Below are positions 11,530 to 17,657 of a stretch of 64,000 bases of DNA, piece by piece. This DNA comes from Asterias rubens (taxonomy: Eukaryota). The stretch lies in contig NC_047071.1 in assembly GCF_902459465.1 (NCBI RefSeq), positions 10,726,001 to 10,790,000 of the forward strand, given 5' to 3'. Both the position numbers and the translations under genes were made by a program. The notes under the pieces are model-generated. The model was not told where the DNA came from and ran no database searches. It worked only from the letters and a program-made list of their open reading frames with translations. The first letter of the stretch is position 1. Each line of letters opens with the position of its first letter.

Positions 11530-12215
11530 GCTAACACTCCACCAGCAGATCAACAATATTCTTCTGCACTCAATCTAAAATGAAATGTTCCTGATGAAAG
11601 ATGGCAAGTTTCAAGTTATTTCGGCTTGCTTGTACTGTAGACTACACAGGCAGACACTATAACACTCCATCAACAACATTAACAATACCCTCTGCATTAA
11701 TCTAATTTGAAACGTTCCAAGTGAAAGAAGCCCAGTTTTAGAGTTACTTAAACGTGCTAATACTGTAAACCTGCTTGACTGCTAACACAAGTCGTACCAC
11801 TGGAGTTAGTACTGTAGTACCGTCGATACAGGCAGACTGTTGATCATAACACTTCATCAACAAGATCAACAATGCACTTCTGCATTCTATCAAAAATGAA
11901 ATGTTCCTGATGATGAAAGAAGCCAAGTTTCAAAAGTTACTTGGACTTGCTTGTACTGTAGACCTCCTTGACTGCTAACACAAGTCGCACCACTGGAGTT
12001 AGTAGTACTGTCAACACAGGCAGACTGTTGATCCTAACACTCCACCAATGAGATCACCAATGCGCTTCTGCATTCTATCCAAAATGCAATGTTCCCGATG
12101 ATGAAAGAAGCCAAGTTTCAAAGTTACTTGGATTTGCTTGTACTGTAGACCTCCTTGACTGCTAACACAAGTCGTACCACTGGAGTTAGTAGTACCGTCA
12201 ACACAGGCAGACTGT
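11530..12215 (-). repeat. Degenerate tandem array (~187-193-bp unit, about 3.5 copies) that includes the stop-codon region of the membrane-protein gene
   Basis: The unit TTGACTGCTAACACAAGTCG(T/C)ACCACTGGAGTTAG...CAGGCAGACTG recurs. Stop-codon positions are 12124, 11937 and 11744. Confidence 0.85.
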
Positions 12216-15200: not shown

Positions 15201-17657
15201 TGCCATATGCCAGGCTAGGACAGACTTGTCAAACTTCTCTTGGCCTGTGGGGTCAATCCTGTTCCTCTGTGGGAAACTTGAAAGTTGTCTGTAGTAGGAT
15301 CTTAAGCCATCCAATACAGCTCCTGATAAGGAGAAACAAAATCAAAATTTTTTGGTAAAAGCAAAGCTCATAGATTCTCTTCCACTGTTTCTTTTTCTCC
15401 AAAGCAATTCATTTTAAAGCTAAGGAAATGTTTTATAATATAATATAATAATGAAAGCATTTATATAGCGCCCCACAAAGAATGGAGCGCTTTACAAAGA
15501 AACAAACAATGCAAAGACAAAGATACAAAAAACAGTACAAGCAAAAACAAAAATGGCCGGATTAAACAAATAAATGGGTTTTGAGCATATTTTTTAACCG
15601 TTCCAGTGTGTTGGCTTCCCGGTTGTTACGGGGAAGGGACTTCCAGAGCCAGGGAGCAGCGGCTTGAAAGGCATGATCTCCTGCGCGTGATTTAGTTTTA
15701 CTGATGTGAAGAAGTGTTTTGTCGTACGATGAGCGTGTGGCATAGGCGGATGATTTGAAAGAAATGAGTTCTTGAAGATATGAAGGTGCTCCTACGTATG
15801 GAGTGGACACATGTGAAAACAATGTACATAATATATATGGACTTGTTTTAGTGACTAGCAAGAAGGACCAGTTAGCTTGACCTTTCACAGTAGTCTGAGG
15901 AATTCAAATAAAAATTTTTTTTTAAAAAGGTAACTCATGACTATACAAGTCAATGTAGCAGTCACTATTCAAATTTGACTTCCAGATGGCTCATTGGCTG
16001 TTCATTGAAATCAGCTGAATAAGAAATAGTAATGGCCAGTCCTACCATGTAAATAGTGAAAGAGAAACACAACGCCCACGACCAGCGCTGCAGAAACACC
16101 CGTCAATGCTGCTACTTGCCGCTGGGTCAACCTCATATTCTCCATCTGTGGCCACAGGCTGATTCCGCCACCGATACCAAGGGTGTGGGCTCGAGATTTG
16201 GCCTCGTGGTGTTTACGCTCAAGAATTTTCTGCTTCTGCAAAGCCCTTCCTGTGAAAAATTTTAAGAATCAATAATTTTCCGTAGACTAGATGAAATTCC
16301 TTTGTTAACAAAGAGTAGAAGTACTATGGTCATGATGGTACAACTGACTTGGACTTTCATCCCTTACAAGCTTGTATACCATTGCAACTGTGGAACTCCT
16401 ATTGTCCCTCTTTTGTTTTTACTCTTAACTTTTTTGCAACATCTCCCATAGACCTTATCGCAAATACCAATGCGCAAGCGCAGACTGTTGAATGAGGTAC
16501 ATTGTGGGATAGATATGGATCAAATTTGGATACCAGCTAGACCACAATGCACCTAATTCCAAGCTTTACGCGCGCGTCCCAGTATTTGTGAAAAGGTCTA
16601 TTGGTACTGTGGACCTTTCCCGAACAGTGGACTCTATTGTACCCTTTTATTTATACAGGTAGATCCCTGTTGTGAATGAGTACGCCTACATTGTACTCAG
16701 CTCAACTGTCACCAGGGGCACGATGCAACCTACTCCTGGGCTGAAACAGAGTTATTAAACCCCTTCATATGATGTAGGCATGGGTATCATCAACTCTATG
16801 AGCATGGTCGGTAGAGCAGAATGTTACTTTCCCAAACTTTTTAAGAAGCAACTGTGATTACACAGTATGTACAGTAACACACGTACATGCCTTGCCTAAG
16901 GGCAGAAGTGTCATGACCAGGATTCTGACAACACCAGAGCTTGGGTCTGGGGAACTTCATTTTGTAGACTGCTCGGCAGGACTACAGCCGTCAGGAGGAC
17001 TGAAAGTTACGTTTATCACCAGTGTGGTACCTTGCCCAATTTTAGTGGCGGGTTCGAAATCCAATTTAGTCCACCAAGACAAGCGGTTCAACAAATTATT
17101 CCTGTTTAGATACAGGGTCGTTATTCATGAAGTGCAATCTGGGGGAATTCTGTGTTGGTCAGCACAGTGTGTTTTGCTCAGCAGAGTGCTGGGCGAAATT
17201 TCATTAGATTCTGGGCAGGCCTGCCCGGCACCACCCACCATGGCTACAACACTGATTATCACAACTAATAATTATTGTACATTTAAACTTTTAAAATCCT
17301 ACCTGGTGTCATCCTGAGTTGTCTCAGACTAGGGCTGACCTGCTTCTCATCATCATCTGTTACTCCGCCCAAAATGGTCTTCTCGAGTCTGTTCTTCACC
17401 GATGTTGCATCCTTCCCCCACCTTTTTTGGACTGCAACGTTCTTTTGCAGAGGGGCTTGATGATGACGGGGTGTTGTTACTGGAGGTCTCACTTTGGGAG
17501 TCTGTTCGAATATGTTTTTCATCTGAGCAACAGGCATATCTGGATCTGCATCAGCATCGCTTGAGACTGGACTGGTGTTCTCTACATTGTCAACGTTGAG
17601 TCGTTCTCGTAAAGGTCGGAGGCCCCGCCTTGGGGATTGCCTCAGTATGCGAGACAT
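12124..17657 (-). CDS. Uncharacterised ~405-aa predicted four-pass membrane protein. Coding exons: 17657-17303, 16249-16046, 15322-15186, 14303-14143, 12959-12842, 12366-12124. Putative 5'-UTR exons: 18427-18354 and ~19700-19456
   Basis: Six exons with canonical AG/GT ends and matching phases (1,1,0,2,0) total 1218 nt (405 aa + TAA). Hydrophobic segments: VAALTGVSAALVVGVVFLFHYL, MCAIFYIIFIGLLLYYLA, IWVSLLVVTGVWSILMMYLLV, YSLPVLTVLLTPVVRLVLAV. No family recognised. Confidence 0.75.
13189..13550. mobile_element. Harbinger-type MITE, 362 bp, TAA TSD
   Basis: TIR GGCC(A/G)AGT(A)nATGTTTC(G/A)CGTCC. TAA at 13186-13188 and 13551-13553. Confidence 0.8.
13805..14117 (-). mobile_element. tRNA-derived SINE with V-domain-like core
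   Basis: Minus strand: tRNA-like head with GGTTCGATTCCCGG B-box, then GCCATATGTGAGTTGAGTT...GGTTCTCT...GAGGGTTTT...CCGGTTTTCCTCCCTC, resembling invertebrate V-SINE cores as recalled. Confidence 0.7.
14560..14830 (+). mobile_element. Deu-type SINE, internally deleted copy
   Basis: Head, core and tail match 1053-1424; a central segment is missing. Confidence 0.8.
15435..15830 (-). mobile_element. L2-clade LINE 3' fragment
   Basis: Minus-strand translation APSYLQELI...TRS...GDHAFQAAAPWLWKSLP...LKTHLF is a typical L2 ORF2 C-terminus, followed by GCGCTATATAAAT and a (TAT)n-like tail. Confidence 0.8.
16448..16601. mobile_element. 154-bp MITE with ATAGACCTT termini
   Basis: ATAGACCTTATCGCAAATAC vs reverse complement of right end ATAGACCTTTTCACAAATAC. 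Confidence 0.7.

Follow-up and report, generated by a model that had tools for sequence, protein, structure and literature searches.

LOC117295866, a gene in the 64-kb window analysed here (the whole 64,000-nucleotide stretch of Asterias rubens DNA), is an expressed-type, selectively constrained gene, and its product belongs to a family of four-pass membrane proteins known only as database predictions, with neither a name nor a Pfam model. The protein consists of a disordered basic tail of ~160 residues followed by a well-folding four-helix membrane domain of ~245 residues. Conserved S/T-P motifs and frequent adjacency of family genes to CENP-H hint at a link with cell division, and a location in the endoplasmic reticulum (ER) or nuclear envelope, together with mitotic regulation, is plausible.

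Several observations establish the gene model. The six exons lie on the minus strand between positions 17657 and 12124 (Table 1), are phase-compatible and are separated by five introns that all have GT-AG boundaries; together they encode 405 amino acids and a stop codon. All 405 residues of this translation match those of XP_033634539.1 and XP_033634541.1, both of which RefSeq labels ‘uncharacterized protein LOC117295866 [Asterias rubens]’. The orthologue in A. amurensis aligns without gaps at 97.5% identity and keeps the same exon boundaries and splice dinucleotides, and the dN/dS ratio between the two species is 0.115. In other species, full-length orthologues are encoded on intron-less contigs of transcript size. 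Thus, the six-exon, 405-residue model proposed in an earlier sequence-only reading of this DNA was correct in its exon phasing, splice sites and product. A prokaryote-style scan for promoters and terminators and an ARAGORN search were uninformative for this eukaryotic locus.

Table 1 Features of the LOC117295866 locus and its surroundings (positions in the window)
Feature	Position	Strand	Content or basis
Exon 1	17303..17657	-	ATG at 17657; residues 1-118 and first base of codon 119; disordered basic S/T-P-rich tail; matches XP_033634539.1
Exon 2	16046..16249	-	Basic helix 121-141; invariant GGGxSLWPxMxxMRL 145-159; TM1 164-187
Exon 3	15186..15322	-	First part of ~60-residue non-cytosolic helical loop 1 (predicted)
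Exon 4	14143..14303	-	End of loop 1 (invariant W224-H225); TM2 247-272; RLTPQRIK 277-284; start of TM3
Exon 5	12842..12959	-	TM3 285-307 and helical extension with invariant E311
Exon 6, including stop codon	12124..12366	-	Loop 3 (YW..RCLPPT, YYLQYYSLP); TM4 377-397; short basic C-tail
Linear motif VSPSLRQLRMTPG	17303..17339	-	Residues 107-119, last codon finishing at 16249-16248; family alignment
187-bp tandem repeat, 3.0 copies	11659..12215		Overlaps 3′ end of the gene
PDIA3-like gene	21178..30801	+	Head-to-head neighbor; exon ORFs; separate from the membrane-protein gene

The 3′ end of the gene overlaps a tandem repeat, which raises the question of whether the last membrane helix is genuine. 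The DNA that encodes TM4 (12151-12213) lies within the threefold 187-bp repeat, and a GT following CCAG just upstream offers a possible alternative splice donor, so that TM4 might be nothing more than satellite DNA that happens to be open in one frame, and the real gene might end or continue elsewhere. Two observations refute this explanation and leave it a negligible probability. The C-terminus, YYLQYYSLPxxTAxxTPVxxLxxALKxxY, is conserved from sponge to shark and TM4 is kept in every homologue, and the six-exon model is the RefSeq protein. The repeat thus represents the 3′ end of the gene duplicated locally and did not give rise to the exon: its first copy includes the final 92 nt of coding sequence, which specify TM4 and the C-tail, and the other copies are non-coding duplicates, one of which, although degenerate, still reads LTPVVRLVLAVKQVYS in one frame. 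BLAST offsets suggest that A. amurensis has about one copy fewer.

The protein is not an orphan, as had been supposed, because its family is spread across animals. A phmmer search with exon 2 against 1.84 billion representative sequences returned 105 matches, and homologues were seen in echinoderms, hemichordates, amphioxus, sharks and rays, early-branching ray-finned fishes, molluscs and annelids, as well as in one nemertean, one brachiopod, one priapulid and one sponge. Named members come from ~9 phyla and include, besides LOC117295866, LOC119745686 (Patiria miniata) and LOC110977291 (Acanthaster planci) in the echinoderm group, and LOC102803668 (Saccoglossus), LOC118430915 (Branchiostoma floridae), LOC121276709 (Carcharodon), W5ML40 (Lepisosteus), LOC106169370 (Lingula) and LOC135819155 (Sycon) elsewhere. 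None of the homologues found came from tetrapods, flies or nematodes. The Patiria and Acanthaster members are 67% identical to the A. rubens protein; members from other phyla are 36-54% identical. Similarity within the family is collinear over the full length, and E-values for family matches range from 1e-40 to 1e-130. Members share a length of ~340-430 residues, four transmembrane helices and one set of motifs (VSPxLxxLRMTPG, GGGxSLWPxMxxMRL, HG, WH, LLYYL, L(T/S)PxRIK, YW..RCLPPT and YYLQYYSLP). The A. rubens protein carries all of these motifs and the four helices, and shows no feature that sets it apart from this unnamed group of ‘uncharacterized protein’ orthologues. All homologues bear ‘uncharacterized’ or ‘hypothetical’ names, apart from a single UniRef ‘Gustatory receptor’ label on a truncated Plakobranchus member in which no 7tm_7 signal is present. 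Profile searches and searches seeded with the sponge protein in a set of 5.8 billion proteins, where a word prefilter restricts sensitivity, added no further named or more distant relatives, and the locus or UniProt identifiers of six homologues (other than LOC117295866) were absent from the literature searched.

Hydropathy supports a four-helix architecture for the membrane domain. The four hydrophobic segments noticed originally in the single protein (~164-187, 247-272, 285-307 and 377-397) recur in a Kyte-Doolittle profile averaged over 30 family sequences, which contains exactly four membrane segments; the remaining predicted helices have mean hydropathies of -0.4 to -0.5. Basic charge clusters in the TM2-TM3 loop, or loop 2 (family-average net charge +4.5), and in the C-tail, and loops 1 and 3 are slightly acidic on average. 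By the positive-inside rule, we infer that both termini and the short, strongly basic loop 2 face the cytosol or nucleoplasm, so that the two long loops, TM1-TM2 and TM3-TM4, would share the other face of the membrane, whether lumenal or extracellular. These long loops are predicted to be helical and probably form one helical bundle. The side assigned to them contains invariant polar and aromatic residues (H186, W224-H225, E311, Y344-W345 and Y372/Q374/Y375/Y376), no conserved cysteine pairs in the family alignment and few glycosylation sequons (averages of 0.67 and 0.07 per loop). In a full-length AF2 model, pLDDT is <50 for residues 1-78 and 93-98 in the exon 3 region of loop 1, and the membrane domain modeled alone has a pLDDT of 82.5 and a pTM of 0.75.

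Despite this confidently predicted fold, no known family or structure accounts for the protein, in keeping with the original judgment that it could not be assigned to one. Pfam searches with the six exon pieces (E-values up to 10) gave only noise, and searches with more than 30 full-length relatives gave no family match. The sole recurrent sub-threshold match was MnhB (10 of 30 members, best E-value 2e-4, with per-member scores not listed), which we read as a likeness between hydrophobic hairpins. An initial guess of TMEM237 or another named TMEM family was dropped because no Pfam family of any kind was matched. Sequence searches of the PDB with exon 6, exon 4, a full-length profile (A1) and a domain profile (A2) found nothing significant, and Foldseek searches of the PDB with full-length and domain-only AF2 models found nothing at E <1e-3; matches to 14-3-3 and translin, with rmsd values near 25 Å, were meaningless. 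Sequence and fold comparisons thus gave no clear match to a characterised family, and the relatives that do exist are themselves uncharacterized.

The best structural neighbors, although non-significant, are insect gustatory and odorant receptors (BmGr9, 8vc2; Gr64a, 8ze0; Orco, 6c70) of the 7TMIC superfamily, which also takes in GRL, PHTF and DUF3537 proteins. These receptors, like the predicted structure of our family, have long membrane helices that reach past the bilayer into a helical bundle. The top two domain-only Foldseek matches were BmGr9 (8vc2_A; probability 0.85, TMq 0.41, rmsd 6.4 Å over 204 columns) and Gr64a (8ze0_A; probability 0.60, TMq 0.38), and these two proteins also ranked highest by probability with the full-length model. 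Orco was the top PDB sequence match with profile A1 (E-value 0.48) but disappeared with profile A2. Together with the Plakobranchus label, these matches could indicate a channel or receptor subunit, either a very distant, shortened relative or a structural analogue of the 7TMIC fold, that forms oligomers via its long helical extensions. We consider this improbable. 7TMIC proteins have seven transmembrane helices, whereas our family has four by Kyte-Doolittle analysis and, because that number is even, has both termini on the same side; no member among 34 matched the 7tm_6 or 7tm_7 profiles at E-values up to 10; and the fold matches do not exceed a TM-score of 0.41 or fall below an E-value of 0.6, the best of any Foldseek match. 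Tetraspanins, MARVEL proteins, claudin/PMP22, connexins/innexins, CALHM and Orai also have four helices with both termini inside, but none of these families appeared among the Pfam matches of 30 members at E-values up to 10, and, in contrast to classical four-pass families, ours lacks conserved extracellular cysteine pairs.

The tail is basic, as proposed from its low-complexity sequence, with a pI of 10.7 and 29 Lys and Arg against 17 Asp and Glu in the first 160 residues, and the SPRR, TPKV, TPRH, SPSL and TPGR motifs listed originally lie at residues 8, 53, 62, 108 and 117. It contains six S/T-P dipeptides where 20,000 shuffles predict 1.6 (P = 0.0016). Across the 26 members whose tails were scanned, 5.5 were observed and 1.6 expected, an enrichment of ~3.5-fold that persists even where the tails can no longer be aligned, an argument that the sites themselves are under selection. 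Individual sites are also retained: S108-P in 29 and T117-P in 28 of 30 aligned members, in the family form VSPxLxxLRMTPG, and T279-P-x-R of the TM2-TM3 loop, as L(T/S)PxR, in all 30. This conservation, with the enrichment, strengthens the idea of proline-directed, CDK-type sites raised by the sequence-only reading, although the basic residue at +3 of TPGR is not conserved outside ambulacrarians. Peptides of the Patiria orthologue were absent from two supplements of sea-star oocyte phosphoproteomes, whose files may be truncated.

The genomic neighborhood of the family offers a second clue. In the window, LOC117295866 is head-to-head with a PDIA3-like gene whose ATG, near position 21178, is ~3.5 kb from that of the membrane protein; one exon of this neighbor matches PDIA3/ERp57 structures (E-value 1e-40) and the Thioredoxin Pfam family, and its product ends in KPDEL. 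The arrangement described earlier is therefore real, but it carries no general meaning, because it was found in A. rubens and A. amurensis and nowhere else. In seven other species from four phyla, by contrast, the gene upstream is CENP-H, as a divergent neighbor in Patiria, Acanthaster, Carcharodon, Haliotis and Ptychodera and in tandem in Amia and Anguilla. The divergent coding starts are 4.5-9.5 kb apart, and a shared promoter therefore remains putative. Asterias, amphioxus, Owenia and Amphiura have lost this linkage. No CENP-H turned up in the 64-kb window when fragments of four CENP-H loci served as tblastn queries, and in Owenia the gene upstream is Pygopus-like rather than CENP-H. Where unrelated genes show deeply conserved microsynteny, cis-regulatory constraint is the usual explanation (PMC3514665).

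We tentatively favor a model, with rather less than even confidence, in which the family acts in an internal membrane, has a kinase-switched cytosolic face and shares regulation with CENP-H. An ER or nuclear-envelope location is suggested, with modest confidence, because the proteins lack a signal peptide and conserved cysteine pairs and have hardly any conserved sequons in the lumenal loops. CDK- or MAPK-type proline-directed kinases would switch the cytosolic face at the near-invariant VSPxLxxLRMTPG sites, which lie beside a conserved basic helix, and phosphorylation would change what the tail binds. The L(T/S)PxR sequence between TM2 and TM3 could be a further kinase site, or this invariant loop may be purely structural, capping a helix while its basic residues snorkel. 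Finally, an ancestral and mostly divergent position directly beside CENP-H suggests regulation shared with a cell-division gene, which would fit a role in proliferating or germ-line cells.

Inner-nuclear-membrane and ER proteins with CDK-phosphorylated basic tails, such as LBR, LAP2-beta, emerin, MAN1 and lunapark, offer an analogy for this model. They share with our family a basic, disordered, S/T-P-rich tail, cytosolic or nucleoplasmic, ahead of the transmembrane helices, and the absence of a signal peptide. They show no sequence similarity to it, however, and Pfam searches with the exon pieces and full-length relatives found no LEM, Tudor, RS, SUN or other chromatin-, lamin- or BAF-binding module in our family. 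The resemblance may thus concern a possible mode of working, not membership.

Two other explanations compete with this model. The protein might instead be a constitutive ER or endomembrane scaffold or enzyme, in which the invariant His, Glu, Tyr and Trp residues of the lumenal helical loops and helix ends form a binding or catalytic pocket, the S/T-P motifs are structural or serve in docking and are unrelated to the cell cycle, and the position beside CENP-H is linkage that was inherited and has no function. This alternative, which we regard as somewhat doubtful but serious, draws on the pattern of conservation, which is highest in the membrane domain and loops rather than in the tail (mean column identity 51% versus 37% over the full length), on the invariance of H186, W224-H225, E311, Y344-W345 and Y372-Y376 and on the repeated loss of the CENP-H linkage while the gene itself stayed. 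It is weakened by the failure of any enzyme or transporter family to match by sequence or fold, and it sits poorly with an S/T-P enrichment that outlasts alignability of the tails. A very improbable alternative places the protein in a different organelle, such as the mitochondrion, in its inner membrane. With six Arg and no acidic residue, the first 17 residues (MSRILRQSPRRGLRPLR) might also be taken for an organelle presequence, and other echinoderm members begin alike. Across phyla, however, the N-terminal sequence is not conserved and many members have early acidic residues, and it would be unusual for a presequence to be separated from TM1 by a disordered spacer of ~140 residues.

More broadly, the internal-membrane model can be extended to a reading that we consider unlikely as a whole but worth stating. 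In this scenario, an undescribed tetraspan family arose early in animal history and was the ancestral, usually divergent, neighbor of CENP-H. Its members would reside in the ER or nuclear envelope, where CDK or MAPK would switch them in mitosis or meiosis, and tetrapods, most teleosts, insects and nematodes would have lost the gene. These losses would explain why the family escaped study.

As the sequence was already in RefSeq as an ‘uncharacterized protein’, the gene itself is not news. What matters is its membership of a well-conserved, animal-wide family that has a confidently predicted fold, lacks both a Pfam model and any relative that is solved or recognisable, and is apparently missing from the standard model organisms. 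Such families fall into a blind spot of cell biology. The oocytes of sea stars, established for live imaging and synchronous meiosis, offer a direct test of this one. Two features provide concrete hypotheses: the near-invariant proline-directed sites and a CENP-H linkage that molluscs, hemichordates, echinoderms and fishes retain. Should the link to cell division be false, the family would still present a new membrane-protein fold to place; if it is true, the family would be an extra membrane component of animal cell division that mammals have dispensed with.

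LOC117295866 is encoded on the minus strand (17657-12124) in six open segments separated by canonical GT-AG introns, and the spliced sequence of 1,218 nt (405 codons plus stop) matches exactly the six-exon model that a sequence-only reading had put forward. All 405/405 residues of the translation are those of RefSeq XP_033634539.1/XP_033634541.1 ("uncharacterized protein LOC117295866 [Asterias rubens]", our P0170), so the gene had already been predicted at this locus. An A. amurensis chromosome is collinear with the window at 81-96% identity; its alignment is gap-free in six of six exons, with splice dinucleotides retained. 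Between the two species, dN/dS is 0.115 (Nei-Gojobori; dS 0.094, dN 0.011), so purifying selection acts on the reading frame. LOC117295866 is a real, constrained gene for a tetraspan protein of an unnamed, animal-wide family, and we regard an artefact as hardly credible.

Features of the window by position
Feature	Position	Strand	Remarks
Exon 1	17657-17303	minus	open segment, compatible phase
Exon 2	16249-16046	minus	open segment, compatible phase
Exon 3	15322-15186	minus	open segment, compatible phase
Exon 4	14303-14143	minus	open segment, compatible phase
Exon 5	12959-12842	minus	open segment, compatible phase
Exon 6	12366-12124	minus	open segment, compatible phase
Tandem repeat, 187 bp	11659-12215		3.0 copies, 86% match
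TM4 coding sequence	12151-12213	minus	wholly inside the repeat
PDIA3-like gene	start near 21178	plus	protein ends in KPDEL
CCP1/AGTPBP1-like cytosolic carboxypeptidase exon	2171-2482	minus	TPR_CCP1_N, E 7e-13
Class-A GPCR ORF	36328-37410	minus	intronless; 361 codons stop to stop; 7tm_1, E 2e-45
Class-A GPCR ORF	43060-44313	minus	intronless; 418 codons stop to stop; 7tm_1, E 1e-43
Long open stretches	~47100-63800	plus	class-C receptor-like by eye
tRNA-like/SINE-like repeats	1088-1399, 14030-14110, 14560-14740, 44334-44630		introns and intergenic DNA

The same reading had called the protein an orphan, which is wrong: an exhaustive phmmer search of 1.84 billion representative proteins with the 67-residue exon-2 piece gave 105 matches, the full-length ones 340-430 aa long. 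Named members occur in echinoderms (the sea stars Asterias, Patiria and Acanthaster, a brittle star, a crinoid and sea cucumbers), hemichordates, amphioxus, cartilaginous fishes (sharks, rays, a chimaera), ray-finned fishes (bichir, sturgeon and paddlefish, gar, bowfin, eels and tarpon, bony-tongues), protostomes (gastropods, bivalves, a cephalopod, annelids, a nemertean, Lingula, Priapulus) and the sponge Sycon. Because follow-up searches were word-prefiltered, tetrapods, clupeocephalan teleosts, tunicates, arthropods, nematodes and cnidarians count as not seen among the matches, rather than as proven absences. The first reading's failure to assign a known family was borne out. Where the database names these matches, the name is "uncharacterized" or "hypothetical"; Pfam matched no exon piece, found no family at E < 0.005 in 14 full-length members, and, with the threshold relaxed to E 10, gave nothing but scattered hydrophobic noise for 30 members. 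A literature search found no mention of six homologue locus/UniProt identifiers. The observations of that reading stood, and its interpretation found partial support, the family being an uncharacterised one.

Several single records are odd. The GGG-motif/TM1 block occurs twice in P0001 (a Branchiostoma hybrid), TM3 is missing from P0102 (Sycon isoform X2) and the P0010 gene model ends in foreign sequence at the C-terminus; all three probably reflect artefacts of annotation or of isoforms.

In the 30-sequence family alignment, a variable N-terminal tail precedes strongly conserved blocks: VSPxLxxLRMTPG, a basic helix (KQxxLxxKHxxAK), GGGxSLWPxMxxMRL, TM1 with an invariant HG at its end, loop 1 (~60 residues, invariant WH), TM2 ending in LLYYLxDN, a 12-residue TM2-TM3 loop (KSKL(T/S)PxRIKxW), TM3 with a helical extension bearing an invariant Glu, loop 3 (~70 residues, YW..RCLPPT), YYLQYYSLP running into TM4, and a short, basic C-tail. 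Family-averaged hydropathy has exactly four peaks (159-191, 246-274, 282-310 and 373-401), the number of hydrophobic segments first proposed. The TM2-TM3 loop has an average net charge of +4.5, and both long loops are slightly acidic, with few N-x-S/T sequons and no cysteine pair; by the positive-inside rule, this tetraspan would expose its N-terminus, loop 2 and C-terminus to the cytosol or nucleoplasm. AlphaFold2, run with the family alignment, predicts a disordered tail (pLDDT < 50 at residues 1-78) followed by a confident helical domain (pLDDT 75.8 for the full-length model; 82.5, with pTM 0.75, for the domain alone). In the domain-only model, TM1, TM3 and TM4 extend as long helices, and two more helices are predicted within the long loops.

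The first unit of the tandem repeat takes in the final 92 coding nt (TM4 and C-tail) and the start of the 3' UTR, one frame of a downstream copy still gives LTPVVRLVLAVKQVYS, and BLAST offsets suggest about one copy fewer in A. amurensis. We dismissed the idea that TM4 is satellite DNA that happens to be open in this frame. Every homologue, from sponge to shark, shares the C-terminal block YYLQYYSLPxxTAxxTPVxxLxxALKxxY, so TM4 is real and the repeat arose when the 3' end of the gene was duplicated locally.

The protein has a disordered, basic, S/T-P-rich tail, predicted to be cytosolic. In A. rubens, residues 1-160 have a pI of 10.7 and six S/T-P dipeptides, where shuffling predicts 1.6 (P=0.0016), in agreement with the basic, CDK-type-site-rich N-terminus originally described; two of the six carry the full S/T-P-x-K/R consensus. 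Tails of 26 members average 5.5 S/T-P against 1.6 expected from composition, an excess that persists although the tail is mostly unalignable between phyla. S108-P is kept in 29/30 members, T117-P in 28/30 and T279-P-x-R, in the predicted cytosolic TM2-TM3 loop, in 30/30. Excess and conservation together support selection for candidate proline-directed phosphoacceptor sites, specifying neither kinase nor cell-cycle stage; the loop site could instead be structural.

Genomic neighbourhood offers a different kind of evidence. The proposed head-to-head arrangement with PDIA3 holds in the window, where one exon of the plus-strand upstream gene matches PDIA3/ERp57 structures (E 1e-40), and in A. amurensis, but is specific to Asterias. 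In seven species of four phyla, CENP-H (PF05837) lies immediately upstream of the family gene: divergent in Patiria, Acanthaster, great white shark, an abalone and the hemichordate Ptychodera, where 4.5-9.5 kb separate the coding starts, and in tandem, 1.3-1.6 kb upstream, in bowfin and eel. In Asterias, amphioxus, Owenia and Amphiura the two genes are no longer linked, and a search of the 64-kb window yielded no CENP-H. Chance retention across four phyla is unlikely, and cis-regulatory constraint is the usual explanation of ancient microsynteny (PMC3514665). This adjacency is an indirect hint, and the sole independent pointer, to a tie with cell division.

Taken together, the protein may belong to an internal membrane, either the ER or the nuclear envelope, proline-directed kinases may regulate it at the conserved motif, and its gene may be co-regulated with CENP-H; we hold this combination tentatively, at somewhat less than even chances. 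A constitutive endomembrane scaffold or enzyme is only slightly less likely. A channel subunit resembling the seven-transmembrane ion-channel superfamily, which includes insect gustatory and odorant receptors, seems improbable, and a protein of another organelle more so. P0103 (Plakobranchus ocellatus, UniRef A0AAV4BZ40), a truncated member without 7tm_7 Pfam signal, is named 'Gustatory receptor' in UniRef; the label, which may be automatic, coincides with a weak Foldseek similarity of the family to insect gustatory receptors.

Elsewhere in the window, the two GPCR ORFs are paralogous, and the carboxypeptidase exon agrees with an M14 peptidase gene downstream of the A. amurensis orthologue. 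The long open stretches resemble, by eye, ligand-binding and 7TM parts of class-C (GABA-B-like) receptors; one scanned piece had no Pfam match. The tRNA-like/SINE-like repeats share frame remnants such as HMGP.ALRPI.RT.QWLS, and ARAGORN found no intact tRNA in 9000-19000.

The discovery is limited in that the sequences were already deposited and any function proposed is a prediction from sequence. As a protein family, LOC117295866 and its homologues are outside everything described among the systems compared here.
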